A DNA stretch of 64,000 nucleotides, taken from the NCBI GenBank assembly GCA_011109175.1, contig RDEW01000010.1, positions 1,020,796 to 1,084,795 on the forward strand, in the 5' to 3' direction. This document shows, in pieces, positions 27,404 to 45,730 of the stretch. This stretch comes from Dicyema japonicum (Eukaryota; Animalia; Dicyemida). The notes under the pieces are model-generated. The model saw nothing but the letters and a program-made list of their open reading frames with translations. It was not told the DNA's origin and did not search any database. The translations under genes were made by a program, and so were the position numbers. Position 1 is the first letter of the stretch. Each line of letters opens with the position of its first letter.

Positions 27404-27867
27404 GATTGTCAAAAATATTTATTATTCTAAGACCGAATAGGTCTATTATCCACGATTATCTCCACATTGAGGCCCAAGTCAATATGATGTTATACACTCA
27501 TATCCATATATAGTAGCCTGTTAGTGATCAATCAATTAAGTATACTAATTAGGTTTGAATTAGTTCTCCCCTTTCTTAGATATTTGAATTTGGCTGGCAT
27601 CAGTAAATCCAAGTCCGCACTTACCCAACGTCAAGTGTCCTTTTTTAGAGGCTCTTACACAATCTTTCAAGAATACGTATACTGGAAACACGGGGAGGAC
27701 TTAATGTGGAAAACTTCGACTGTAGAAGGTCAACTTTTAGTTTTTAGTCAGTAGTGTTTATAAAAAATTGAATAAAGCATACGCGCTAAAAACGGTGTAT
27801 ATTGAAATTTTTCAAATATTCATGCACATTACGTTCGATTTAAAAGAGCTAATACTTGGGGGAAGTA

Positions 27868-28291
27868 ATGTTCGATTTATTCATATCAATGATTGCTATG
27901 ATATTAAACAACCGCGAACTACGTATCGCAGAAGAGAGATCTCGGGCAAGTTTAATTATATTTTTAATTAACCGAAGGATGCGAGAGAACAGCTGGTTTA
28001 CTTGAGATAGAATATTGGGCGTGGGCGGATGTGTACAGATATGTAAAAATGGGAATCAATCAAGTCCAAGATCGATTTGGAGATATCTGTCCTGATGAGT
28101 ACAATAATGTAATGCATTATGTCACATTCTGGATACATCTTAGACTCAATGAAACACATAGTGGAGATAATCAAAATTCTCGTTGTGGACAAATTCCATT
28201 AATTCGTCTAGCGAATACATTACTGGAAAAAAACCTCAATTCCACGAATATTAAGTTGAAGCTGTACTTGGACTGCGTTTTAATTAATTAA
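27868..28291 (+). pseudogene. Secreted 4-Cys family, copy 1 (splice sites decayed)
   Basis: MFDLFISMIAMILNNRELRIAEERSR is followed by an intron-homologous 26-mer that reads GC...AA and is 1 nt out of phase. Exon 2 (ORF 28031-28291) keeps the Cys pattern. Confidence 0.7.
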
Positions 28292-29580
28292 CGAACTAAT
28301 CATGCTTTTACTTTCCTGATTAACACCGATATTAATAAATTCTGTAATCCGATAGGACATCGCCTGCATCGACTCTCTATCTCCTGCTAATATAATCAGG
28401 AAAGCGGTGAGGGCATTATCCCCCAAAAGGCAGAGAAGGGTAAGGGGAGGAAATACCATGAGACAACCGATGGATAAACAGAAAGTTTTTGATTTTTCAA
28501 GAGACTGGGACGGCTGACTACAATCAGAAGCCACGACGTCCGAGAAACCCAGTAATTCCACTAATTGATCTTTATTACTACCGTGAAAGGCAATGGAGTG
28601 ATTGGAAGACAGTTCCTTTTCATGTTCATCGTGGTAGAAATCTTGGGTTACTTATCGCAAAATCTCTCACTCTTTTAAATGATGTACATGGTTAGGGAAG
28701 AAGGAACAGTTTCAAAGAAGGACGACTGATAGAGCCCATCTCCACAAAAATCATTGAGAAGTACCTCCACTCATCTCTGTAGAAAAATCCGATCGGGATT
28801 GAAATTTATGGACAAATCGGTTTTCTAGACGAACCGGATTTCTATCTTCCTCACAGACGATGAGGAATCAGGTCGTAGCTTTAATAAGTAGGGGAGAGAT
28901 TGATGATCCAGTTGGTGGGCCCAGCATACGGATAGTTGTTTGATAAAGCATGTTGAGTCTGTTGATCAAAGTCTCAGATAACGAGGATCTCCACACAACA
29001 GGGCACTATTTTTGGTTGCTACTGTTAATTTTTCCACATTTTCTTTAGAAAAAGTTGTTCAACAACAGTTTCAAATTTAGGCGTATTTTTGAGGAAAAAA
29101 TCTTCTCAATGGGAAGTTTCCTAGGAAATGTGTCGAATTCTGTCAACGGAGACGATTGTTGTACGCATGTTAGGTAAAGCTGCATTAAAACTTAAATTTG
29201 AGTGCAGTCAGGGAATTAACCGATTGGAATATACACATTAGTCAGTGCTGCCTACGAACACGGTTTGAACCAGTTATCTCCCTTTCTCAGATATTTGGTT
29301 GACATCAGTAAATGCAAGTCTGTGTTTAACCAATGTCAAATATCCCCTTTCAAATGCTCTGACCTGATCTTTCCGGAGTACATAGTATACCGGAAACATA
29401 GAGTGTAGACTGAAATGGGAAAGTTCACTTTGAGTTTCTCAATCGAGGAGTGTTTCTGTAAACATTAAATAAGCCAGACGCGGTAAAATTAATTCTCGTC
29501 TGAGATCTCACGATTCGACGAATCTCAAAAATTCATCCACATTACGTCCGGTTTAAAAGAGCTAACACTTTCGGGGAGTA

Positions 29581-30092
29581 ATGCTTTATGTATTTGTATC
29601 AATGATTGCTTTAATGTTAAATAACCGCCAAATACGTATCGAAGAAGAAAGATTACGGAGTAATTTTAATTTTTTAATTTATTTAAATTTAAACCAATAA
29701 ATAATTAATAATTAATTAACACAGCCATCCATCCAATTTTAATTATATTTGTCAATAAAAAAATAAATTAATTAAAAATTAAATTAATAATTAGATGAAA
29801 ATTGTGAAAGAACAGCTCATGCACTTTTGGTGGAACGTTCATCATGGGAAGATGTATACAGATATGTAGTACTCGAGTGAACCAAATCCATGCGGAAATA
29901 GAATACTTTTGTCTTGATGAATATAATAATGTGATTTCTTATGCAACCTTCGTGCCACGTGTTGAACTTAATGGAAGTTCCTACTGCGAACAAGTAACAT
30001 TACTTCGTTTAGCCAATACATTAATTGTAAAAAACCTCAATGCAACGACTAATAAATTAAGGCAGTACGTGGACTGTGTCTTAGATTACTAA
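29581..30092 (+). pseudogene. Secreted 4-Cys family, copy 2 (1-nt frameshift, expanded intron)
   Basis: Exon 1 reads MLYVFVSMIALMLNNRQIRIEEERLR, then a 135-nt GT-AG intron 29660-29794. Exon 2 has a frameshift near 29868, and ORF 29844-30092 carries the homologous C-terminal part. Confidence 0.72.
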
Positions 30093-30988
30093 CAAACTAT
30101 TTGTCCTTTCCTAATAGTATTATGTTATAAAATACTAAATTTGTTATTTGTGTATCTGTTCGTTTACATATTTGGATAAATGAATCAAAAATCAAATTTG
30201 GAGAAACTTTTTACTTTGAGAGATATACTCTGTGAACGTAAGGCGGATAGAGCGCCTGTTGGAACTGACGTGTCACTTTCCGCAAATCTGAAAACTCGAA
30301 GTCCAATTGTTGTGGATTCGATCCAATACGAATTTGTGCCATTGAAGTGCACACGTTTCTGTTTGGGTCAAGATTGGAGGCCTCTACGTGCTCTGAGAAA
30401 ATTGAAAAGTTCATTTCTGAGTCGAGGTTGCATTGGGAGTTAAACATGGAGAATATAAGCTATGGGTGTTCTTGGAGTTTTTCTTGTCTCCTCAAACAGG
30501 TTACTTTGTAGAGCACCCAGTTATACGGAAGATATTAGGAGTGATCATATACCGCAAGACTGAACAGTAATTTTGGGGTAGGGAGAACTGCTGATGTTTT
30601 CCTTGGAGATGAGCAGATGGAGTCACTATAAGACGTTCATTCATGTGGAGAGCTGAGAAAAGTAACAACGACTAATGATATTAATCGTTTAAATGCCCAT
30701 ATTATTAACTTCTTAAAACTGTCTGGCACGTGTTCCGAAGAAAGTCATACTTCGGAAAATACAGCGAAGATTTCATATCATGATAAATCGCGGAGAGATA
30801 GAGTCCGACGTTGTGCTGACACTAAAGATTGCAACACCTTAACAGGCAAGATATCTTAAGAAAATTAAAATTTTTTATTTTCAAATTATTTTGTGTTTTT
30901 CGCGTTTAATTGCAAACAAAAAATTGCAAATACTGAGCTTTAGGTTATTCTTAAAGATAACTTATCCAAAACCTGAAAAAATTAATTG

Positions 30989-31040
30989 GAGGCCATTTTG
31001 AATGGAGGCCGTTTTGAATGGAGGCCATTTTGAATGGACA
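30989..31040. repeat. 16-bp tandem repeat, three copies
   Basis: GGAGGCC(A/G)TTTTGAAT repeated three times; probably transposon subterminal repeats. Confidence 0.75.
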
Positions 31041-31089
31041 CGATTTTAAACCGTTGATATTTCGTCATTTCAAAGATTTAATGTAACAT

Positions 31090-32420
31090 ATTTTCATTCA
31101 ATATTGATTTCTTCACATTCGCAAATATAATCCATCGTTTTCAAAATTGGATCGCGCAAACATCTACCTTGAAGCGGTTTCGTCATCCAATAATGTCTCA
31201 GTGAGGTACATGGTAATGCCTTGAGCCATGCACCACTTTCGTTCGTGGATGCAGAAGTCAGATGATGATGGTCTACTTCAGTTTGAGCATAAAAGCTTGT
31301 CAAACTCTCGTTGTTTATTAGGTTCTTCAGAAATCCCACACTTAGTCACGTCCAGACTTCCGAGCCGTGCATGCCAGTAGTTCAGCGTCTGACCCGTTAA
31401 TTTAGCGTAGGATCTGGCGTGTAAGACCACTGGAAGGATATGTCGAAGATAGAAAGGCCGGGGAGGGAGAGTTCTAGTAGTGAGTTTATTCCGATTCCTC
31501 CGTAGCGAAGCGGTAGTTTGTATTGGATCCAGTAATTTTTATCAAAATGTTGAGTGTTTATTCAATGGCAGTCCTCAACTTCTCGTCGATGGCTCTTAAG
31601 AGTTCATGTCATAGAAACATGGGGCTGTTCGTAGAAGAAAAAAGAGTAAGGTGAAAATTCCTGAGGAAAAATAAAGACGTGTGGGAGTCCAGAGTTTTTA
31701 ATAGTTGAACGGATGCAATTTTCTCTTCCATGAGAGTCGACATATTACTGCCATATAGAGGAGATTTGAGAAAAATTCGCTTTTCGAGTCTGGTGACTGA
31801 GACGTCCTGGAGATAGGATGAAATCGTAGTCAATGCATGGTTAAAGTTGTCCTTTCCACAAGAAACGTTATGATTTCACCTTTTGACGGATTCGGTTCCA
31901 ACCCAAGTTCTTCAAGAGCAGAGATGGCGGACTCCACATCTGCCACCACAATTTCCAAATTCCCCCGATGGTCATATCACCATAAGTTCATTGGGGTTCT
32001 GTTTGATTAAGTCTTATTATCGATGCCCAAGGCAAAAAGTAGGAGGCTTGTTGGATTCCAGTCTTAAATTCGATGGTATGTTGTCCTAAGATCAGCGTGA
32101 ATGGGGTACCATATGAGAGTTTCACCATCCTGATAATTTCCAAAATCCTGGAGATGATATCTTCTATGGTTAACAGTATCGTATTTAGAGGCATTTTCTC
32201 GATGATTGATTTGAGGTTTCCTTTCTTTCAGTTCGTTTGGATGTGATCCGAGGAGAAGAGGTGCAAAGCAGAGAAGACGAATCCAGGCTCTTAAGTATTG
32301 TCATCGACTGCCCTGGTGATTAGCTTTGAAAGACAGGAGGCAGCTATTAGACACGTCGATCTTGCGATCCTAAGTGAGGTCCACTTTCGGTTCATTGTCG
32401 TTCGTTCTGTTGGTAAGGTT
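31090..32420 (-). mobile_element. CRE-like retrotransposon remnant
   Basis: RT remnants, LPLRYGGIG and SGAWLKALPCTSL motifs. Confidence 0.8.
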
Positions 32421-32689
32421 TACCATTTTTATTCTCAGACTCAAAAGCGGCCCACTAGACCAACTCAACACGTTTTTGTGTATATATTAAATTCAAATTA
32501 TATAAATTTCTAATATCACGATCTTCATACACAGTAGCTAACATATCAAACATTTTGGAGAAGACAGGTAGATATTTCCCAAACGTCTCTGGATCATTGA
32601 ATAATTGTTAATTTTTGCGTTCATGTGAATATTAAACAAGCCATACGAGCTAAAATTAATTTTCATCTGTGATCTCGCAATTTTATGAA

Positions 32690-32747
32690 TTTCAAATATT
32701 TATGCACATTGCGCTTGATTTAAAAGAGCTAATACTTTCGGGAAGTA
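32690..32747 (+). promoter_or_regulatory. Conserved proximal promoter of the secreted family
   Basis: A block TTTCAAATATT(C/T)ATGCACATT...GAT(T/A)TAAAAGAGCTAATACTTTCGGGAAGTA-ATG is conserved, with more divergence in copy 5 and the 40.7 kb copy, before all copies. A TATA-like box starts ~29 nt before the ATG. Confidence 0.65.
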
Positions 32748-33160
32748 ATGCTCGATTTATTTATATCAATGGTCGCTTTAATATTAAATAACCGCCGAAT
32801 ACGTAGGGCAGAAGAAGAATTACAAAGTAAGTGTATTTATATTTTTAATTAGATGAAAGATGCGAAATAGTAGCTCATACACTTGAGGTCGAAAATTCAA
32901 CATGGGACGATATATACAAATATATACTAAGCAGAGTTAATCAACTTCACACACAATTTGTCGATTCGTGTCTTAATGAATATAATAATGTAACTTATTA
33001 TGCGACATTGGCGTCACATGTCGAACATAATCGAGAAAATCAAAATTCTTACTGCGAACAAGCCACATCACTTCGTTTAATCAATACATTATTCATAAAA
33101 AACCTTAATACAACGACTAATAAGTTTACGCAGTATGTGGATTGTGTTTTAGATGACTAA
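32748..33160 (+). CDS. Unrecognised secreted 4-Cys protein family, intact copy 3 (128 aa)
   Basis: Exon 1 32748-32826, 26-nt GTAAG..TAG intron 32827-32852, exon 2 32853-33160. Protein: MLDLFISMVALILNNRRIRRAEEELQNERCEIVAHTLEVENSTWDDIYKYILSRVNQLHTQFVDSCLNEYNNVTYYATLASHVEHNRENQNSYCEQATSLRLINTLFIKNLNTTTNKFTQYVDCVLDD. AATAAA lies ~37 nt after the stop. Missed by the ORF track. Confidence 0.85.
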
Positions 33161-33238
33161 CAAGCTAATTGTAATTTTCTGATTAACGTAGTTATCAATA
33201 AATTTTGTGTCTGTCTGTTATCAATATTAGATTATAAG

Positions 33239-34960
33239 TAGGGCAACCAGAAAATTGCAATTTTTAAAATGGAAATTGCAAATAAAATTTTTTTAATTGT
33301 AAAAAATTGCAGTATGGAAAAATAAACGAAATCAATTAATGGATTGGACTTAATTTGGGACTCCCGAAGAACTTCAACTTCAACAAACAACGAGACTGGA
33401 ACGAACTTGTATGTTCGAGGACCATCGATGAGCTAAAACCACAACTCGACCAGCATCGTCTGACTTGTCTGGCTACCGCATCAACAAACGTAAGTGGTGC
33501 ATGGCTCAAAGCATTCCCGTGCATTTCACTCGGAACTTTTCTGGACGATGACTCCACGAGGATTGGGGTTTGCGTCCGCCTCGGAATCGATGTTTGCGCA
33601 ATCCATGCGAAAGGACTCCACGCACTTTCCTGCCGAAGGAGCGCTGGAAGGAGCCTGAGACATAGTGCAATCAACAAGGTTATTGCGTGGGGACTAGAAG
33701 CTGCCGGATTCCCTGTCCAGATGGAGCCCCTAGGACTTTCCACGGCAAACAGAAGGCTGGATGGAGCGACTCTGTTCCCGTGGGATGCTGGGAAGTACCT
33801 GGCCTGGGATGCCACCTGCGTAGATAGCTTCTCCCCTTCCAATATTACAATGAGTGCGACAAATCCAGGCTCAGCTGCAGAGAAAGCAGAAATACTTAAA
33901 GCAAAGAAGTACACATGCCTCGGCGAGCATTACACATTCGAACCAGTCGCAGTCGAAACTTCGGGAGTCATAGGAAGCAGGTCGTTAGCCCTGCTCAACC
34001 AAAATTGGATCGTTAGTCGCTAAAAAAGGAGGGATGTCAGAGAGAAGGTGGCTCATTGAGAGCGCATCTCTTAAAGATCGTAAGGGGAAATGCGCTCTCA
34101 ATCCTGAGAGCAACCAGTAGCCTTTAACTATTTGGTTTTATTCTTCAATAAATTGTAATTATTTAAAAAATTAATGTAATACGAAATTAAATATTCCTGA
34201 ACATTTTCAAAGTTTCGATTTTTAGAAAGAATTTTCGTCAAAAAAGATATCCCTTTCAACTGAAACTGAGCTTCCGCAACAATTTCGAAAATATGAGTAA
34301 TTTTCTGGCTAAATATTTTTATTTGGGAAAATCAAAAATACTTAAATCTCATAAGATCAGATCTGCATAAGATTTTTCAATTGAATAATCGAGAACCAAT
34401 AGTTTGATTTATTTCGGTTAAACTTGAAAACCACGTGTGAATATTAACTGATTCTTTTGCATAAAATAATTAAAAATCGAAACATTTTTGATTGAAACTC
34501 CATCTCCTTCAAAATCAGAGACAATTTTAATATTTTCTGGAAGATTTTGGGGTATTATATGGCTGCTTTTTGCCAGCTTGACTTCTTGTGAGAATTTCCT
34601 AAGATGAATTTCCTATTTTTGAGAACATTTCACAGCGTCTTTTGTTCTTCACCGTGGCAGCCTTTAAAGAAGAAATCAGGTTATCAACATCTGTGAAGTA
34701 GGATTTTATTCTTTGTGTAATAGATGTGAAACAAAAGTGACGTGGGAAAGATTTGGATATAAAAATTTCATTGAGGTCCCAGCTAGAGTTAGATTTATTC
34801 TACCACTTGTCATATCTTGAAGACAAACTTTTCACGTGCATCTGTGACGAATAAGACGAACTTTTCACGTTCAAATGAAAATTCTCATTATTTCATCAAC
34901 TTCAACACTAATTGTTAAGTGGTAGGCGGAAAATGTAGGTAGTTACACGATACGAGAAAC
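33239..34960 (-). mobile_element. hAT-like transposon remnant (TAGGGCAA end), interrupted by a CRE insertion
   Basis: TIR TAGGGCAAC at 33239. Minus-strand IKSYFTDVDNLISSLKAATVKN and CCGSSVSVER motifs. Confidence 0.65.
33340..34150 (+). mobile_element. CRE-like retrotransposon 3' part (best-preserved copy)
   Basis: ORF 33355-34023: [42 protein letters not shown] and PVAVETSG. Confidence 0.88.
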
Positions 34961-35039
34961 AATTATAGCATTTTTTAAAACTTTTTTTAACTTAAAAAAA
35001 AACAATTATTTCCGTTTTATCTTAAAAGGTTAATTCTAA

Positions 35040-36350
35040 TAAAAATGTCTTCTATCCAATTCCTCTTCGAGGAACTAAGGAGTAAACCCAATTGTCACAG
35101 TCCTTCTCCTTTTCCTCAATATATATTGTCATCACTTCGCTCACACTCTTCTCTTGAATTTCTTCATAATCAGACCGAGAGTAAATATCCTTTACCACTT
35201 CATTAAGTTTATCATAACGTTGCGAAACGTCGACTTCGTTCATATATGACACAGTCATACTCTACAAAGTCTTCTTGATTACCACGATTCAACATACGCA
35301 TACGTTCTTTCACTTTTATTCACAGATCTGGCACTTCCACGAATGTAAAGTCACTAGGCCATCCCAAGTGAGTACAATTGGGACAATCTTGACCTCTGCT
35401 TGGTGTATCAACTCCAGCTCTTTGGAAAAAAAGTCATAATCCCTCAGCTTTTCGCATTCCACCTGCTGTAGATTTTGGGAAGATGTTGCTCCTACTTCGA
35501 CCAAGGTAATTTTGTTTCCCCTTTTATCAAAAACGAACAGGTCTGGCTTGTTATGCTCAATGATTACATCCGTTTTGATTAAGGTCAACTCTGATTTTAA
35601 CTGAGTTTTCATTACAATGGATTGCACTGAATGAGTCATCAGTTACTTCTCGTTTTTGAGACCAAATTCTCTGCAAAAGTGGAAATATAGACACCGCTTG
35701 ACTACGTTATGTCTTCTTGCATAATCCCCATGCAACATCTTTTCACAGCTTGATGATCCACGGTCTTCTTCCATTTTTTACAATGGGTGCACATTGCATT
35801 TTGTTCTCCAAAGAACAAATTCCTATCTTGAATAAGGCAGAATAAGGCTTCTGACCTTGGGGAGTTATTCCCTTTTAGAAGCCAATGAGAGGAATGCTCC
35901 ATATTCACATTATCCTACAACAAATTCTTATAAATAACGAAATGAAGATTCTTCACTCTTATTTGATTCATCATTAACCTTCTTTTGCATGTTCGATATA
36001 AATTTTATATCCAACTCAGAAGTGTCGCAAACAGAATACTAATGCTTAGAAATTCTTCGATTAATGCCAAATGTGTTTTATTCCGAAATTTCGGCTTGAA
36101 GAATTGTGGCACTTCTACTGCAAACAGTACTTCTGAGTTTCAAATCCTGAAAAAATTCATATAACATCTTCTCACTTAGAAGAGAGATTGAGTGTAGCCC
36201 TCTCCCAAGGTATTTCCTCGTTAAATAAAGCCTCTGCTTGCATGCAGGTTTGAGATGGAATCGATGTTTAATCAATATGGTGCGGATAGCTGAGTCAATC
36301 AAGTCGTATTCATATGGTTCCATATTAATGAGTCCGATATAATAGTTATA
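35040..36350 (-). mobile_element. R4/Dong-like RLE retrotransposon 3' part
   Basis: RLYLTRKYLGRGL, CTHC zinc knuckle and HNKPDLFVFDK...VEVGAT motifs. Confidence 0.85.
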
Positions 36351-37667
36351 TAAAGAAAAAAGTTTTTTTAATTATTAAAAAAATTTTTGAAAAATAATTG
36401 CAAAAGTTTCAATCATTGACTAAAATTGCAAAAAATAGCAATTTTAAAATGAAAAAAAATTATTTATTTAAGTTACATAGATAATTAATAATTAATTAAC
36501 ACAGCTATCCATTTAAAGTGGACCTCGCCGACATTTTTGGTCTTGCGTTGCCTTCATGATTGCAACAAAGATCAACTGGAGAAGCCACCGGGTTTCACGT
36601 GAGTCGTGGCTATTTAGTGTAGTTAGGCGTTCAAGTTTCTTTAGAAAGCGAAACGATTTTCCACTTTGGCATCTCCACCAGACTTGGATTTGAGATTTAC
36701 GGACTCACAAATGCTGGTGTCGATTGTTATGGACACCATGCCCTCTCGAGTCGAAGAATTGCAGGAGGATTCCCAAGACACAAGGCGATAAACGGAATTT
36801 CCAAGCGAGCCTTGGAGTCTGAGAGATACCCCGCAATACTTGATTGAACCTGTTGGCCTGGAAAAAATTTTTTAAGCATTGACTGGATATAGTTGAAGAT
36901 TTCAAAAAAGAGTCTTTCGGGGTTGCGACCTGATCTTGCTTCTTTTCAAAATCTTAAGGCCGATTTCTCGAAATCAAATTCATTAGAATTCAAAAAAAAT
37001 TTATTTAGTAAAGAAACAATCAATCCGACGGTCATACGGTAGCCAACCTGACTGCGTGGCTATTCTTTTTTCAGGATACTAGCGATATTCACTCTAATTG
37101 CCAGGAGCGCTCGCGGATGTGTATTTAGAATTAATCTGAAAAGTGAACATTGATGTGTGATTTATAAAAGCGGTTTAAGATGCTTTTCCCAAACTGTTTC
37201 GATTTCTCTTCGTCGCCCTTAAATCGTTTATTTGGATGAATCGCCTATGAATAGATTTTCACGTAATTTTGTGTTTTTGTGTGTCAAAATAATTTATTTT
37301 TAAGCATGCGAAAGCAAATTTTAATGAATTCAAAAAGTGGAGCTAAAACAGTCAGGAAAACCAAACTACGGTCAGTTAACAATGAATTAAAAATATTTAT
37401 AATAAATTCAAATTATATAAATTTTCACCATCACGATCTTCATACATCATACCATAAACAAACACTACGGGGAAGACAAGATATTTCCCAAAACGTCTCT
37501 GACTCACTGAATAAAGATAATTTTTTTAATTTTTGAACGTTCATGTGAATATTACACAAGTCATGCGCTCTAAAATTATTTCGCACAAAAGATCTCGCTA
37601 TTAGATGAATTTCAAATATTCATGCACATTACGTTTGATTTAAAAGAGCTAATACTTTCGGGAAGTA

Positions 37668-38080
37668 ATGCTCAATTTATTTTTATCAATGGTCGCTTTA
37701 ATATTAAATAACCGCCGAATACGTAGGGCAGAAGAAGAACTACAAAGTAAGTTTATTTATATTTTTAATTAGATGAAAGATGCGAAATAATAGCTCATTC
37801 ACTAGAAAACGAAAATTCAATATGGGACGATATATACAAATATATACTAAGCAGAGTTAATCAATTACACTCACAATTTGTCGACTCGTGTCTTAATGAA
37901 TATAATAATGTAACTTATTATGCGACATTGGTGTCACATGTCGAACATAGTCGAGCAAATCGAAATTCTTACTGCGAACAAGCCACATCACTTCGTTTAA
38001 TCAATGCATTATTTATAATAAACCTTAATACAACGACTAATGTGTTTACGCAGTATGTGGATTGTGTCTTAGATTACTAA
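37668..38080 (+). CDS. Unrecognised secreted 4-Cys protein family, intact copy 4 (128 aa)
   Basis: Exon 1 37668-37746, 26-nt intron 37747-37772, exon 2 37773-38080. Colinear with copy 3 at an offset of 4920 nt, with an open frame and a downstream AATAAA. Confidence 0.85.
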
Positions 38081-39289
38081 CAAACTAATTGTACTTTTCT
38101 GATTAACGTCGTTATCAATAAATTTTGTGTTTCATGTCATCACCAAAGAGATTTTTTTTCACTGAATTCAAAAATGGAGTAAAAAGGAAAAATTCAATAG
38201 ACCACGGTAACTAATCACGTGATCACGGCATGCTCCAAAAGAGACTTCCTCGAGCCAAACAAGTACGAATGGACCGTATAACTGGTTCATCGTTGTCGCA
38301 ACGGCAGTTCTTACGTATATTCATAGGTCACCCACCATACCACAGCCAGTCGAGCACTGAGTTAAAAAATAAATATCTTATATATTTTTAAAAACATATC
38401 AGGCTTAGAATCTGAGGTCCCCTTCGAATCTTGTCCATTGCTTTGGTAATTGTTGACGTTTTTGTGCGTATATCAGTCTTCTGAACTCAGGCATTGTTAT
38501 TTCCTCTCCAACTTAGACTTGAACCCTTCCAAAAGCATAGCCCATCCACCTCTAGGGACACGACCGAGTCTAGAGCGCGTGCTTTTAATAATCGAGGTAT
38601 CCCATAGTTCTCGACAATCAGCTGTTGAGGAAGACATTATTACTCGTAAAACCGGAAATTTCGTGTTGTTTTGCTGAGGACGAATCCTAGAAGCATCCGC
38701 GTCGGAAACATGTCGGACAAACTCGGCGGCCGTTCGATTTGGGTTTTCTTTACTCAATTCGGAAAAATTCGCATAATCCGATAAATTTAGATAATTCTTA
38801 CCAACAACAACCATTAACCTTTTTAAAAAACTAATAATTTTTCTTAATCAACATAATTTTGAATATTGAATCCCGCCGGCATAATTGATGAAAAGTTGCC
38901 TCACATGAAAGCAATAATGATCAACTGGAAAATCCACTGGGTTTTACGGAGGTTGTGGTTTCTGAGTGTGCCAGACGTCCCAGTCTCTTGAGAAAATACC
39001 GTGACTTCCCACTTATTTCTCCAGTTGACTCTATGACAAAAGCGTGGAACATCTTCATTAAATACAAATTAAATGAATTTCGATTTTCAGTAGATAGATA
39101 ATTTTATTAACATAACAAACTCGTTACTAATTAAAAAACTAATTAAAAAGGGATAAGCCAACGATTTTGTCCTGGTTGATGGGGTCTGGTATAACGAGAC
39201 ACCATATGTCTCTTTTTCGAATTATTGACCTTTTGCATCCGACAAGAATTATTTTTTCAAATGGTGCAATATTTCCTCAACGGATCTTG

Positions 39290-40040
39290 CACGTCTCTCA
39301 TGATTAGGCGGTAATTTAGACTTTAAATTCTTGCAGCGATCCGATTCCCTAGACAAATCAAGAATTCCAGTGTTGCAGGAGCAAGGGAACCATACGTCTC
39401 AACGGCAAGTCGGACAAACAAAAAATCCTTAGGTAGGACCGCGTACTTTTCCCGTTTCAACTTCTCGGCCTTCTCAGGCTCCAGAGGCATCTGCTGTAGG
39501 TTGGTAGAGGCAAACGTGTCGGTGCAGGTAACGTCCCAGACAAGAGGTTTATCGTTACCAGCTTCAAAGAGGAAGACTGTCATCCTGTCTAGTCGTTTCC
39601 CGTCCCGCCTGCAAAGACCGACTGGTTCGAGCATGGAGGGATGTCCGACAGCATCTAAAGCTCTCCTAACGACTTCGTTCAAAGCATGTGTCTGGGAAAT
39701 CTGCCTGCACTCTTCCTGCAGGAGAGAGGTTGTAAGCCAAAACAGTCAAGCTGGTCTCCCCATCGGCACGGATGTGGAACACAGACTTTTAATCCCAGTC
39801 GTAATGAGATCCCAATACGGACGCATTCATCATCCAGGAAGGTACCCATAACTCCATTGGGAACGGCGTTGAGCCAAACATCGCTCTCGGAAAACTGCCC
39901 CGACAACAAACAGGCACGGCGATGTTGGCTACATGACACTAGCAAATCTTCGAAAGAATTCCAAATAAAGCATCGTCCAGGCCCCGCTGAGAGATCGAGG
40001 AAAGCAGGAAAGCTGATAAGCACGGTTCTCGAGAATTAGG
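39290..40040 (-). mobile_element. CRE-like retrotransposon 3' part
   Basis: ORFs 39679-40023 and 39323-39682 with WLNAVP, SCRKSAGRFPRH, WDVTCTD and AVETYG. Confidence 0.85.
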
Positions 40041-40694
40041 AATAAAATTTTGCTGTTTAAAAATCTTTTGGCTGTGAGTTTGACAGGATGCCTAATGAAC
40101 TGTAATTGGAGGTCATTGCATATTGAAACAGTGAAGGAACCTTTCTTTAATTCTAATGGTGACATCAATGGTTGGGACAGTTTACGTTTGTGAACAATTT
40201 TTTTTCAAAAATGAATATTTTCAATGAATGATGAACACGTGAAACAATCATAAAGCAAACATCGAAGACAATTTAAAAGGAAAGCGTCAGTTCCACTAAT
40301 CTCACCAGCTTTTTTTCCATTTTTGAGTTTATTATCGATATCTTCCGAGAAAGCACTTGATTAGCTGCTGTACATTATCTCTCGGTTTTTTCAACAGGTT
40401 TGAAGTTCATTACCAAAAAACATCAACTTGGACTCGATTTGTCAATTCATGTGGTCAGTATTTGCCGTCTTCATCAAACAAAAAATATCGCACATTCTAT
40501 TTTGGGATTAAAATAATTAATTTTAGCCTCAGTACGTTGAGCTATGCATTTCTATACATGTGCCTCATGGGGACCTCACATTTCTTAGACTAATAACAGA
40601 ATAACTTAAAAAATGTTTTTGGAGTTCCGACAGATCTGTGATTCTCTTTGATTTAAGTCAGTTTGAGCCCGTGGATTAGTAAACGATAATCATG

Positions 40695-40814
40695 TAGCCT
40701 ATAAAGAATAAGATACTTTTTCCCTGCAGTCGATTTGGCTGAGAATAATACATTTTTAAATATGCATGCACATCGTCTTAGATATAAAAGAACTTGTGCG
40801 TTTGCGAATTGATG
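40695..40814 (+). promoter_or_regulatory. Orphan sixth promoter and ATG of the secreted family, cut by a retroposon insertion
   Basis: Homologous to 45240-45359, with TATAAAA at 40783 and ATG at 40812. A short retroposon follows immediately. Confidence 0.6.
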
Positions 40815-41369
40815 AATTATTCCACGGGTAAAACCAAACTAAAATAGAATTATTCCACGGGTAAATCCAAACTAACTAATTTCTGACGCGTTCCAGCATA
40901 ATCTTCACCAAGAACAGTGATTCAGAGGGTGTTGTCCGTCGATTCCAGAACTTGTTGCCAGGGAATTAAATTGTCTCCCGGTGGAAAGAATAGTTGGATC
41001 CTCTTGAATCTCGGCCAGGCATTGTGCATCACCTGTAAGGTAGATCCAATGGCGCTATCAGAGGAAAGGAGAAGAAATTTTCACCCCAATTAGCCGGATA
41101 CCACCACATGGCGCCACATCACGCGCCTTAAATACTTAATTTATGGTATTATTTTTAGTTAAAAAGTAAATATAAAATTAACAATTTCTTAAGATTAATA
41201 TATTTTTTATTTATTAATTTTTTTGAAATTTACAAATATTCAGTTCATAGAGAAACAACTTAATCCCTTTAATCTACTTTAGAATAATGAAGATTCTATT
41301 ATTTTTTTACATGAAGGGGGTTTTTCCGGTAAAAGATATTGTAGTCGTTATTTGTTTAATTACCGATAG

Positions 41370-41720
41370 GTGGTGTAGGAATGATAGTAGAAATAGATGA
41401 AAGTATATATTTTCTAAACGAAAAAATAATTGGGAACGATTATTCACCCAACAATGGATTATTGTGGAAACTAAAAAATGTTTCTCATGGAAATTCAAGA
41501 TCGCACTATGAAAACACTTACAAAAGCGATAATCTAGAATGTGACAGTTGGCTTAACACTTATATCTATTGGCGATGAGTTGACCAACAGTCTTCAAGAT
41601 ATAGGTTTGGTACATATGTCGGTAAATCGTCACTATAACATTATTGACGCGAGTACTGGCCTACACAATGCATATAGAGGGGTTCTAGTATCATTAAAAC
41701 TTTTGCAGATTGAGGGGTAA
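41370..41720 (+). mobile_element. Merlin (IS1595/ISXO2-like) transposase remnant
   Basis: IVEIDES followed after a frameshift by KRKNN...QQWI, then HMSVN and IEG remnants. Confidence 0.65.
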
Positions 41721-42299
41721 TACTAAATGGCGAAACTAAAGGAAGGTGGAACCATATGACACATTCTAAACAGCTATTTCGTCCCTAACCTCACCCGTAA
41801 CCCTAACCATGAATTCGACGCAATATTAATGGGAATACGGAATCTTTAGCCCCAACAACAAATTATGACTAAATAAAACTATTTTAAAGACCAGACGTGC
41901 TCGGGCTAATAACTACAGAAGTCTCAACGGAGATCGGCTGGACAACGAAACGGTTCACGATGTCGTGGTACTTCCTTTTTTCAAATCATCAGCAGTGCTC
42001 GCTGCGGAACCCGCGTGCAACGATGACTTAAGCAAATTCCTATTAGAGAAAGTGTTCATGCATGTTGAATCCCCCAAGACACCTCCCATGACTTAAAGGG
42101 AGGTTTGTTTCTTATTATTAACCCAAGAACATCAATAGTTAATTTAATTACTAAATTAATTAAGTGATCTCGAAAGCCTCTATCAGATTTCTTATTTTCT
42201 CCTCGTACGCCTTCTGGGATCCAACGCAACTTCTCTGTGGGCGGGGTGGTTTCGGGAATAGAAATTTGAGAAGGGTGATGTATACCCTTCTTATAAGAC

Positions 42300-44880
42300 A
42301 CGTCGTGGCTGTGTATTGTTAAGAGTTGCACTGCCTGCACATGGTAGTAAATTTCTTTCCATTTTGTCGGATAAGGTCGTCAAGTGATGAGGGTATTAGT
42401 TTTTTTAGTTTCCCGAGATCCCCAAGATTTCAGTTTACTAGTGAAAGGTATTTTTGTCTGGTTGATAAATATATCCACCATCATTTGTCCAAGTTGTTTG
42501 TCAGAGGTAAATATTCTTCAGTCTTTCTGATGCCTTTAGGAGATCTTGATCGCGGGATCCGATTAAAAAGTCATCAGCGGAGGAAATCGTCTTTATTATC
42601 GGGTTGTGGTAAATCGGACATGCATAAGTTAAATAAGGCGGGTGATAAAGGGGAGCCTTTTGGGACACTATTGGGTAGTAATTTTGAAACTGATTTGGTC
42701 CCATCCATGTTTACCCGGGCCCTTCTTCCATTGATGGAATTAGCAGCTAAAGTTTTATATTGGAGTTTACGGAGAGGCCAAACAATTTCTGGGTTAGGAT
42801 TTTCCTTGAGACAGAGTCGAAGGCCTTTTGTAAATCGATCGAGCAAACGACTGTTTTGAGGTGGCGTGGATTTGTGTTTAAGCCTTCAAGGATAAATTGG
42901 TTGAGGGAAGTTAGGTGGGTAGAAGTTGAATATCCCTTTCTGAATCCATGTTGTGAAGACGAAAAAAAGGGACGGGGTTATAAGGTTAAGAATCAATTTT
43001 CCAATAACTTTGATAAGCTGCATAGTAAAGAGATTGGTCGAAGTGATGCAGGATTTTCCTTAGGCTTCCCAGGCTTAAGGATTGGGCGTATATAGAACAG
43101 TTTCCAAATAGTCGGAATTGTATTCATGTTTATTGAATAGTTGAGAATCACTGTGATTACATCAATCGCAATAGGTCCAAGATGTTTTAGTAAGATACCA
43201 GAAATAGAATCAGACCCACGTGAGAGCGAAGAATTCATCCTCTTCAAACTCTCACTGACATCTGAATGTGAGATAAAGTCAATCAGTTCTCTTCGGTCTC
43301 ATTGAAGACAAAGAAGGCCCATCCATTTTTTTGTAAGTTTTGTGGCTTATACTGGCGTAATATTTCATAAGTTTGTTAAAACTGTACTGATCCGTCTGTT
43401 GTCTGTTAAAAGTACCTTTAGGCCAAATTGTCTAATTTCTCTCCACATCGTCTGAACAGACTCTGAAATGGACGGGAAGATACTAGTTTGTCCCATTTGT
43501 TGGCTTCAGCTTTTCTAATCCTTTTATATATTTCGTCATTGAGAGTTTTTGTTTGAATTTTCTTTCCGAGAAGGAAGGTACGTGTCTTTTCAGGGGATTC
43601 CTTTCTTTAATTAATGATTTGGTGTTCTGATCGAGATTTTCATTGTAGAATCTAAATGATCCGCGCGGAATGAATGTTCTCCCGCCATGAGAATAGTTTT
43701 GTTTAAAAAGTCAATAGCATCATCTATTGAGAGACTATCCTTATGTTAAAGTTTAGTAGAGCTTGATCGATGTATTTTGAATAGTCTTTCCAGTTTGCTT
43801 TCTTATAGTTGAAAAATGAAACAGTCTCTTTCCTGTGGTAAAGAACTTTTTTGATTCAAATGATGATTGGATTGTGGTCAGAAAATAATTCCCATAATTC
43901 ACCGTCCAAGCTGTGTCCGTGCAAGGTTTGGGGAACAGAGGTAATGTCTAGGGACGTTGATGCTTCGTTTTCCTTGTAAGGAGTCCTAGTGTGCTTCTTG
44001 GAGTTGTTGAGGATAGTCAGGAAGGTGAGCTAGTGTAATAAGGATAATCCTCTTGAGCCTGTGATTTTAACCAGGCTGGATGTTTAGCATTGAAATCTCC
44101 ACACAATATCAGGCTTCCGAGCTTGTTTAACTTGGTTAGGTTTAGTGAGAATCCCTTCGGGCAAGAAGATGGAGAGGGACGTAGATGTTTGTAATCTAAA
44201 GAGTCCCAATCCACTTGTAATTGATATCCCAGATATTTCCGTGGTCCCATCGTTTATTAGTGATTGTAGTTTTGCTGAGATGTCCGTAAATTGAATGTTA
44301 TCTTATAATGATAAAGAGACCCCCACCACGACGGTTCGAGCGGTCCAGGCGGATGCAGTGATATCCTGGAAAATGCGAGGTAAGTTATGATGGAATAAGT
44401 CAGTTTTCTTGAAGTGAAATCAGGTCAATGTTCTGTTCTTTAATGAAAGACCGCAATTCGAGAATTTTGCTTTTGATTCCGTTGATGTTTATCTGCAGAA
44501 TTAAGAGTGGAGGCCTGGATCAAGTTCAATGTCACCGACGAGAATTATCAGAAACCCATTCAGCCGAGGGGAATTAAGAAAGGGAAGACGCTGTCGTCCA
44601 AAGAATCATTCTTCGGATGGGAGGTTGTTAATGGTCATTTTTCGCGTTGCATTAAGTGCACCCTGAGTGCCTCCAGAAGGCTCATCACTGGTAGACCACA
44701 TGACGCCACGTTCTAATATTGCGAAAACATTGTCAATAAATATCCAAAGGATTTCCATTGGACGGAAATTTGTTTTGTAATTATGCAAGAAGCAGTGGTT
44801 TATCGAAAAGCACCGCAACTCAAAACACATTGCACGGATTCCAAATACGAACAATAGATTGCAAATTATATTAAAAATGA
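42300..44880 (-). mobile_element. I/Jockey-like LINE, largely complete ORF2 (APE plus RT), decayed
   Basis: ILQINING, LQEN, GGGL and CGDFNAKH (APE); LRPISLLCSLSKLLE, QHGFR, VPKGSPLSPALFN and ADD (RT). Confidence 0.88.
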
Positions 44881-45356
44881 CTTTACTACTTATTGTTGGC
44901 TATTGACTTCCAGAGACATTTTCACATGCAAATATGCCGCTTTGTAAGCTATGAAATCATGCAATCAAACTTTTTCGACTGGAAGACATTGGATATAGAA
45001 AATTTCAAAACGTGGATCGTCCAGTAAACTACTATCATATCACAGGCTGTTAGTGTTATCACGATGTAAGCGTTATTATAAAGAAAATCAATTAATTTAT
45101 TTTTTCCACTACACATTGAGAGATCACTGTAACAATCTCTTGCCTCGATACATAATAGCGCATTTCTTTGCCAATCATCAGGGTAAATGCGTTTTCAATT
45201 ATGAGAGCACCAGTAGTTGTTAACTGCTAGTTTTTGCATTGTCTGTAAAGTATAAGATATTTTTCCTTGCTGTCGATTTGGCTGAGAACATAATAAATTT
45301 TTTAAATATGCATTCACATCGTCTTAGATACAAAAAACTAATGCGTTTGCCAATTG

Positions 45357-45730
45357 ATGCTGGTTTTATTGGTAGTAAAAATTAAATAGTAACTTTATAT
45401 TTAATTTAAATAGAAAAACTGTTGACAGAAGCTTTCCCAATTTTTTTAGCATTGAAAGCTATTTACAGACAGTCAAATGATCGTGTCGATAGTATCCGAA
45501 AAAGACATAAAAGAATTTGTCTTAAAAGTACTGGAGAGCAAAGTATTATACAACACTTGGATATCTTAAAGATTTTCATAGTAAGAACGAACCAAACCAT
45601 AATCTTCAAAAAGTGCCCTATTTGTGTGTAGCAATTTCAATTTAAAAAAAACATGCACAGTACATCAATTAGATATGATCAGTACATAGAATCTATTTTA
45701 AATGAAGATTATTCTCCTAAGACTTTGTAA
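45357..45730 (+). pseudogene. Divergent member of the secreted family, copy 5
   Basis: Same promoter block and ATG spacing, and a ~25-nt GT-AG intron. IYRQSNDRVDSIRKRHKRICL aligns gap-free to IYKYILSRVNQLHTQFVDSCL, and KNMHSTSIRYDQYIESIL aligns to KNLNSTNIKLKLYLDCVL. Several frameshifts. Confidence 0.6.

Follow-up and report, generated by a model that had tools for sequence, protein, structure and literature searches.

The question raised by a 64,000-nucleotide stretch of the Dicyema japonicum genome (C2:1020796-1084795, hereafter the window; GC content 30-42%) is what the small, repeatedly duplicated genes on its forward strand encode, and whether they are functional genes at all. D. japonicum is a parasite of the octopus kidney, and dicyemids are animals of approximately 30 cells. 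An earlier note on this DNA, made from the letters alone, had described a clustered, fast-evolving family of small secreted helical proteins with four cysteines (Cys) and no recognisable homologue, and had proposed that they are processed ligands or effectors. Our analysis points to an answer that keeps part of this description and that we regard as probable: the copies would belong to a Dicyema-specific family of real genes which encode secretory, doubly stapled three-helix proteins, are served by a dedicated promoter, and arise and die by tandem birth-and-death. The genome searched was the D. japonicum assembly of 67,542,437 bases in 377 contigs, to which labels such as C1, C2 and C35 refer; the published assembly is given as 67.5 Mb in 377 scaffolds, with 36.7% GC, 49% repeats, 5,012 genes and 1.24% heterozygosity (PMC6736024). 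Homology searches and structure models were run on exon 2 alone, exon by exon, and exons 1 and 2 were joined only for the reading-frame test across candidate junctions and for the pooled counts of codon differences.

Gene copies and gene plan

Repeat finding and alignment yielded four clear paralogous units in the window, all on the + strand, at 27.8, 29.5, 32.7 and 37.6 kb, with ATGs at 27868, 29581, 32748 and 37668 (window copies are named c1 to c6). Copies c3 and c4 are intact. In c3, exon 1 (32748..32826; 26 codons plus 1 nt, reading MLDLFISMVALILNNRRIRRAEEELQ) encodes a hydrophobic N-terminus that resembles a signal, with RRIRR behind it, the phase-1 intron is 26 nt long (32827..32852, GTAAGT..TTAG), and exon 2 (32853..33160) encodes a predicted four-Cys three-helix domain of 101 residues and ends in a stop. 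The layout of c4 (37668..38080) is that of c3 shifted by +4920 nt, with exon 1 at 37668-37746, a 26-nt intron at 37747-37772 and exon 2 at 37773-38080. An AATAAA signal is kept approximately 40 nt past the stop in both copies (33197-33202 in c3 and 38117-38122 in c4). The Cys positions 30, 66, 94 and 124 that had been reported for these two copies proved correct and equal exon-2 positions 3, 39, 67 and 97, and the NVT and NTT sequons are likewise present. The duplicated unit that c3 and c4 share is only ~740 nt long (32483-33210 versus 37398-38130, 88.7% identity), spanning from approximately 265 nt 5' of the ATG to just beyond the conserved AATAAA, and the flanks are unrelated.

The c1 gene (27868..28291, + strand) consists of exon 1 (27868-27949), a candidate intron of 28 nt (27950-27977, GTTTAA..GAAG) and exon 2 (27978-28291, including the stop); exon 2 is free of internal stops, has all four Cys and matches the family profile with an independent E-value (i-E) of 1.4e-42. 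In the register of c3 and c4 the GT and AG are gone from c1 and the splice sites are shifted relative to those copies; in-frame splicing is nevertheless possible, and the acceptor TTAACCGAAG is the one used by C35-A, an intact member on C35. Copy c2 (29581..30092, + strand; exon 1 29581-29659, exon 2 29795-30092) is a probable pseudogene with an AT-rich intron of 135 nt (29660-29794), a 1-nt frameshift near 29871-29876 that leaves exon 2 reading in two frames, and a shortened loop between helices 2 and 3. Copy c5 (45304..45651, + strand) is a decayed relic: its family promoter (45304-45339) precedes an ATG at 45357 whose reading frame ends at a stop 10 codons on, the fourth Cys is missing, and the exon-2 remnants (45452-45529 and 45526-45651) are collinear, frameshifted and only marginal matches to the profile (i-E 0.39 and 0.017). 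Copy c6 (40758..40814, + strand) is an orphan family promoter with its ATG at 40812-40814, the coding body having been replaced by a dispersed repeat that begins within ~30 nt of the ATG. The sixth, orphan promoter of the earlier note is therefore real, and its five same-strand genes become four clear paralogues and the relic c5. As an observation, the cluster is confirmed.

Directly after the c6 ATG, at 40815-41120, lie two tandem copies of a ~30-nt motif (AATTATTCCACGGGTAAA.CCAAACTAA), and the dispersed short repeat next to them gave 731 first-look candidates genome-wide. A whole copy of this stretch, at 85-87% identity, adjoins a broken c3-like gene on C359:26-28k.

All intact members examined share one plan, namely an ATG, an apolar stretch, a polar stretch, a mini-intron and the Cys domain, the second exon encoding approximately 100-110 residues with four invariant Cys. 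Their GT..AG introns are 22-30 nt long, mostly not in multiples of three, and always in phase 1, and in the intact members checked the Met-started hydrophobic exon meets the frame of the Cys domain only after removal of the intron. Since intron length varies and removal always restores the frame, this is good indirect evidence that the introns are spliced. The 26-nt phase-1 intron that had been singled out in c3 and c4 is present but is nothing special, as introns below 30 nt are the genome-wide norm in D. japonicum (PMC13644364, PMC6736024).

The N-terminal apolar stretch comprises approximately 12 residues (ML.LLI.LVSLV-like) and is followed by about ten polar residues. Mean Kyte-Doolittle hydropathy over residues 4-13 is 2.2-3.0 in all nine models, and each of the nine has the hydrophobic h-region, the polar c-region and the single apolar span by which a secretory protein is recognised. 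A signal part on its own exon with a phase-1 intron is typical of secretory genes, and the hydropathy data favour the signal-peptide-like first exon that had been proposed. Conservation of the signal in the style of conotoxins was considered and dropped, residues 1-14 being 40% identical in distant pairs versus 33% for the domain. Alternatively, the proteins might be retained in the cell, the N-terminal stretch being an uncleaved anchor or an intracellular helix and the bundle sitting at the membrane, in the endoplasmic reticulum (ER) or a granule, or in the cytosol. Retention would suit the lack of a basic n-region and the positive charges that follow the hydrophobic core in c3 and c4, and the generic structural neighbours include membrane-proximal parasite surface bundles (VIA-align Z-scores of 8.4/7.1 for 4e40, 7.1 for 5vtl and 7.0 for 8rd2). 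However, a run of ~12 apolar residues is too short for a membrane span, and no C-terminal hydrophobic or glycosylphosphatidylinositol (GPI)-like tail was found in the family sequences. In addition, the four invariant Cys and the conserved sequon fit an oxidising, glycosylating compartment, and the phase-1 exon structure is that of textbook secretory genes; we consider retention unlikely and favour secretion.

The RRIRR motif raises a further alternative, in which the protein is a prohormone-like precursor that is cut at this site by a furin-type convertase and releases a four-helix ligand resembling a cytokine or pheromone. The furin consensus is R-X-K/R-R, which RRIRR fits; the predicted product is small, helical and Cys-stapled; and the genome contains one convertase P-domain locus (P_proprotein, PF01483, on C46, 52 bits, above the cut-off). 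However, only c3 and c4 have RRIRR, and a single C112 copy has RRIRK; c1 (RELRI), c2 (RQIRI) and all eight other intact members lack the motif, and other subfamilies carry unrelated polar linkers in its place. Because the motif is confined to one subfamily, furin or prohormone processing is not a trait of the family, contrary to what had been suggested. Moreover, RRIRR lies 2-7 residues past the hydrophobic core, nearly at the expected signal-peptidase site, and a convertase cut there would take off almost nothing beyond the signal peptide. Together with the predicted fold, which has three helices with short loops (see below), this makes a convertase-released ligand quite improbable.

The family promoter

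Upstream of the ATG, members of the family align without gaps. The promoter consists of AAATAT[G/T]CAT[G/T]CACAT, 8 or 9 bases, and a TATAAAAGAAC-type box, the first T of which lies ~29 nt before the ATG. The promoter windows are 32694-32747 for c3, 37614-37667 for c4, 27814-27867 for c1, 40758-40811 for c6 and 45304-45356 for c5. The c1 promoter (27814..27849, + strand) reads AAATATTCATGCACAT ... ATTTAAAAGAGC, its TATA-like box standing ~29 nt 5' of the ATG, and matches the combined pattern, as do the promoter cores of c3 (32704..32729, + strand; GCACAT-N9-TTTAAAAGAGC) and c4 (37624..37649, + strand) and the c6 promoter (40768-40793). Across 67.5 Mb the combined pattern gave 14 matches versus 0 for a reversed control, and all 14, those of c1, c3, c4 and c6 included, stand a short way 5' of a member of the family or a relic. 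The 16-mer alone gave 19 matches versus 0 in the control, 16 of them beside family loci, including c5. The other three (C46:522892, C79:409994 and C345:1477203) have no family coding sequence downstream and are either truncated or orphan promoters or chance matches; the C345 copy continues as family promoter for a further ~10 nt and then diverges, which suggests a truncated orphan promoter.

Divergence of the promoter (-62..-1) is 2-4 times below both the synonymous (dS) and the nonsynonymous (dN) divergence of exon 2 in the same pairs. For c3 and c1 the promoter value is 0.18 versus 0.55 and 0.39 for exon 2, and for C35-A and C35-D it is 0.12 versus 0.52 and 0.50. Within the unit, constraint is thus strongest on the promoter.

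The family promoter holds the palindrome TGCATGCA inside AAATATGCATGCACAT, plus a perfect TATAAAAG-type box, and its motif, which may resemble POU/octamer sites, contains out-of-frame ATGs that would open upstream reading frames if transcribed. Spliced-leader trans-splicing was considered as an explanation for the short distance between TATA-like box and ATG, and no support for it in Dicyema was found in the literature consulted.

Predicted fold, family and selection

The AlphaFold2 model of c3 exon 2, made with the family alignment, has a mean predicted local distance difference test score (pLDDT) of 88.1, a predicted template modelling score (pTM) of 0.72, and helices at 2-34, 40-62 and 66-100. 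A C35 member that is 28% identical gave the same three helices with a pLDDT of 94.2 and a pTM of 0.80, and in both models the helices are joined by loops of 3-5 residues. The domain is thus confidently predicted to be an up-down-up three-helix bundle. In this topology Cys3 comes to lie next to Cys67 and Cys39 next to Cys97, and because an up-down-up bundle sets the pairs Cys1/Cys3 and Cys2/Cys4 at opposite ends, one disulfide would staple each tip (Cys1-Cys3 and Cys2-Cys4). Structural neighbours of the two models are generic. Foldseek against PDB gave best E-values of 0.47 and 1.6, and the Atlas structure search with the c3 model returned bacterial helical domains at template modelling (TM) scores of 0.59-0.67. 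The wide VIA-align search gave best Z-scores of 10.6 and 9.6, in both cases for the bacterial periplasmic motor protein PorM, and VIA-align itself flags such values as common for helical bundles. We take these matches for a common helix arrangement rather than kinship. The AlphaFold and Foldseek check that had been recommended, carried out on exon 2, thus speaks for the helical bundle with a four-Cys framework and against a cytokine-like fold: three helices are predicted, not four, and IL-6 and leptin reach TM-scores of only 0.20-0.29, with E-values above 0.9 for helical cytokines. Along the sequence, helix 3 alone shows a clear periodicity of 3.4-3.5, and column entropy was not significantly correlated with hydropathy (Spearman -0.12, p 0.22).

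None of the homology searches detected a relative. For four exon-2 translations no Pfam family, the saposin-like and Taeniidae antigen families included, was matched above its gathering score; the best E-values were 0.009-0.2, all far below the cut-offs. When c3 exon 2 and an alignment of 12 sequences were each compared by word index with 5.8 billion proteins, no relative was returned, an exhaustive search of 1.84 billion representative proteins with the family profile gave 0 matches, and a search of the ESM Atlas by features gave no usable match. The absence of a recognisable homologue, as had been noted by eye, is thus borne out by Pfam, sequence and profile searches. The genome paper counts 313 lineage-specific clusters without describing them (PMC6736024), and no publication on this gene family was found.

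Within the genome, c3 exon 2 alone gave 21 matches, and a profile built from 12 members, used for the genome-wide count that had been called for, gave 35 matches at ~28 loci on 14 contigs. The family clusters on C35 (at least 7 members), C2 (the window), C10, C80, C1 and C374. A complete stop-free exon 2 is present at 13 loci, and the remainder, approximately half of the family, are truncated or interrupted by stops or frameshifts. Across whole 3.3-kb loci, C10 and C80 match the C35 cluster colinearly at 94-96.5% identity (C35:1183-1193k versus C10:29-34k and C80:16-21k), C374 is colinear with C1 at 96-97% identity, and the intact or broken state of members differs between the colinear copies. 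These three contigs would be either haplotigs, with segregating null alleles, or young segmental duplicates, so that the non-redundant family count is nearer 20. At 26-31% identity to c3, the four Cys (exon-2 positions 3, 39, 67 and 97), E42, Y49 and Y94 are invariant, the best-conserved block being DxCxxEYNNIMYYxTLG; some members of the C35 type have two extra Cys. Of the 11 non-redundant intact members, 7 keep a sequon at one particular column of helix 3, and no member is without a sequon. These results support a clustered, lineage-restricted family with birth-and-death dynamics.

As the earlier note had seen, the window copies are interleaved with transposons: LINE-type (long interspersed nuclear element) and short-repeat insertions and retrotransposon debris lie between them, and a weak RVT_1 match was found at 42574-42843. 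The open reading frame (ORF) of the family could in principle be cargo of a mobile element, which would account for its many copies and for the ~740-nt unit of c3 and c4 with its unrelated flanks in repeat-rich DNA. However, Pfam found no reverse transcriptase (RT), transposase or integrase domain in the family unit, which runs from promoter to poly(A) signal as a gene does. The ~28 loci, mostly in tandem clusters, compare with thousands for true repeats nearby, and the copies are 26-88% identical as protein and under selection, unlike the products of a transposon burst. We therefore regard mobile cargo as very improbable indeed. The ORF at 33355..34023 (+ strand), between c3 and c4, stands outside the family and is the tail of a LINE-type retrotransposon; more than 5000 first-look candidates were counted for it across the genome, and elsewhere it lies within long LINE-type ORFs. 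This ORF and the one at 39323-40023 (- strand) have no Pfam domain and belong to the C-terminal region of a LINE family with very many copies, in which ORFs reach up to 1949 aa elsewhere and the post-RT domain appears uncharacterised.

We counted 15 replacement and 7 silent codons between c3 and c4 (22 differing codons), exactly the numbers that had been obtained by hand. Over both exons of this pair dN is 0.062-0.064, dS is 0.087-0.094 and their ratio (omega) is 0.66-0.73; the 15 and 7 codons as such correspond to an omega of 0.66-0.78, and exon 2 by itself to one of 0.68-0.90 that varies with the method. Across intact pairs, the Nei-Gojobori (NG86) omega ranges from approximately 0.5 to 1.7, with some pairs at 1.3-1.7. 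A maximum-likelihood codon model of the 11 non-redundant intact exon-2 sequences gave an omega of 0.63 (0.68 with rate variation) and rejected omega = 1 for the family (2dlnL, twice the log-likelihood difference, = 15.4), indicating that the exons are under selection as protein. The family evolves fast under weak average constraint; roughly, a fifth of the columns are nearly invariant and the others change near the neutral rate. The fast evolution that had been claimed is borne out; positive selection is possible, but these values do not establish it.

Damage to so many loci also suggests another explanation, in which the copies in the window, or even the entire family, would be silent relics, namely duplicated ORFs that decay among transposons and have no present function. 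Stops or frameshifts in approximately half of the ~28 loci, including the broken c2, c5 and c6, agree with this, as does the fact that no transcript or protein is on record; and the dN/dS of c3 and c4 rests on just 22 differing codons. Against it stand the family omega of 0.63 with rejection of omega = 1, and the conservation of the Cys, the EYNN motif, the splice phase and the promoter across members that are 26-31% identical. In particular, a promoter conserved beyond synonymous sites is unexpected for dead genes, and we find it improbable that the family consists of relics.

Overall, these results support the hypothesis of a family of living secretory genes, which may work as follows. Each unit of ~0.7 kb would comprise the family-exclusive TATA promoter, a first exon of ~25 codons, a phase-1 mini-intron and a second exon of ~100-110 residues. 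Exon 1 would encode a short, cleavable signal peptide, and in the ER the domain would fold into the up-down-up three-helix bundle, one disulfide pinning each end, with an N-glycan on helix 3 in most members. The protein would then be released extracellularly, into the host urine or between parasite cells, and may act by binding, with constant tips (DxCxxEYNNIMYYxTLG and YCEQIP) and freely varying helix faces. Over time, the family would change by tandem duplication, rapid divergence and frequent gene death amid retrotransposon insertions.

Several observations weigh against this account. The N-terminus has no basic n-region, with an acidic or neutral residue before the hydrophobic core in c3 and c4. 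RRIRR follows the core in these copies, which by the positive-inside rule is an unusual orientation for a cleaved signal, and the N-N at -1/-2 with basic residues directly after is atypical for a signal-peptidase site. A TATA-like box ~29 nt from the ATG would imply a minimal 5' untranslated region or an unconventional start. The disulfide pairing is indirect, being deduced from helix topology rather than from coordinates. The public runs that contain the stretch are four runs of one 2019 study, all genomic in behaviour, and their genomic contigs cross the c3 intron unspliced and show no joints. Nothing that resembles the family occurs in collections of 5.8 billion or 1.8 billion proteins, approximately half of the loci are broken, and the dN/dS of c3 and c4 by itself is indistinguishable from neutrality. 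Apart from these points, the genomic unitigs of the four runs (X1-X4) over 32600-33300 break at words common to the paralogues, and several differ from the window by 2-9 positions over 80-185 nt, which fits c3 alleles or close paralogues in the pool of animals sequenced.

Possible role and comparison with known systems

A role as effector, cytokine or pheromone is pure inference. One idea, which we put forward as speculative and rather unlikely in this specific form, is that dicyemids invented the family for communication outside the cell, either as a pheromone-like signal between parasites or as a coat or effector on the octopus renal epithelium. If it were pheromone-like, it could be the long-postulated density cue that triggers the change of adults from asexual to sexual. 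Communication of this kind would call for high output in one cell type or stage through the private promoter, and for helix faces that diversify while the two stapled tips stay as the receptor-binding part. It is common for parasites to have secreted, Cys-stapled families restricted to their lineage, and the phenomenon is familiar in kind. Nonetheless, 20-30 orphan, secreted-looking genes in a reduced genome of ~5000 genes are concrete candidates for signals between host and parasite or among parasites, and the promoter motif offers a handle for finding the expressing cell type or stage and its transcription factor.

Among known systems, the genes for cestode antigen B/hydrophobic-ligand-binding proteins (PF05596) are lineage-restricted, arranged in tandem and made of two exons, and encode a small, all-helical secreted product. 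Like these, the Dicyema genes form a clustered family of a parasitic spiralian, with a signal-like part on exon 1, a short intron and a helical product (predicted here). In contrast, there is no sequence or Pfam match between the two, and antigen B subunits are of ~8 kDa and lack a four-Cys framework, whereas the Dicyema domain has ~100-110 residues and two predicted disulfide staples, and no ligand cavity is evident in it. The class I helical cytokines IL-6, leptin and CLCF1 are also small, secreted, helical and disulfide-bonded, but long crossover loops connect their four helices, and they gave Foldseek E-values of 0.9-2.1 and TM-scores of 0.20-0.29; their fold is a different one. Trypanosome surface proteins (HpHbR 4e40, ISG75 8rd2, and 5vtl) were placed by VIA-align at Z-scores of 7.0-8.4 over 95-101 aligned residues. 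They too are long antiparallel three-helix bundles of extracellular parasite proteins; however, VIA-align itself rates this Z range as a generic helical arrangement, identity is 5-10%, and the trypanosome proteins are 2-4 times longer and membrane-anchored. Finally, the pheromones of the ciliate Euplotes (Er-1 and relatives) are secreted, disulfide-stapled up-down-up three-helix bundles of 38-40 residues with three disulfides. They have no sequence relation to the Dicyema family and were absent from all structure search results, but they resemble it in that a stapled three-helix bundle, here a predicted one, is carried by rapidly diverging paralogues or alleles and acts by binding, which for the Dicyema proteins is a proposed mode of action.

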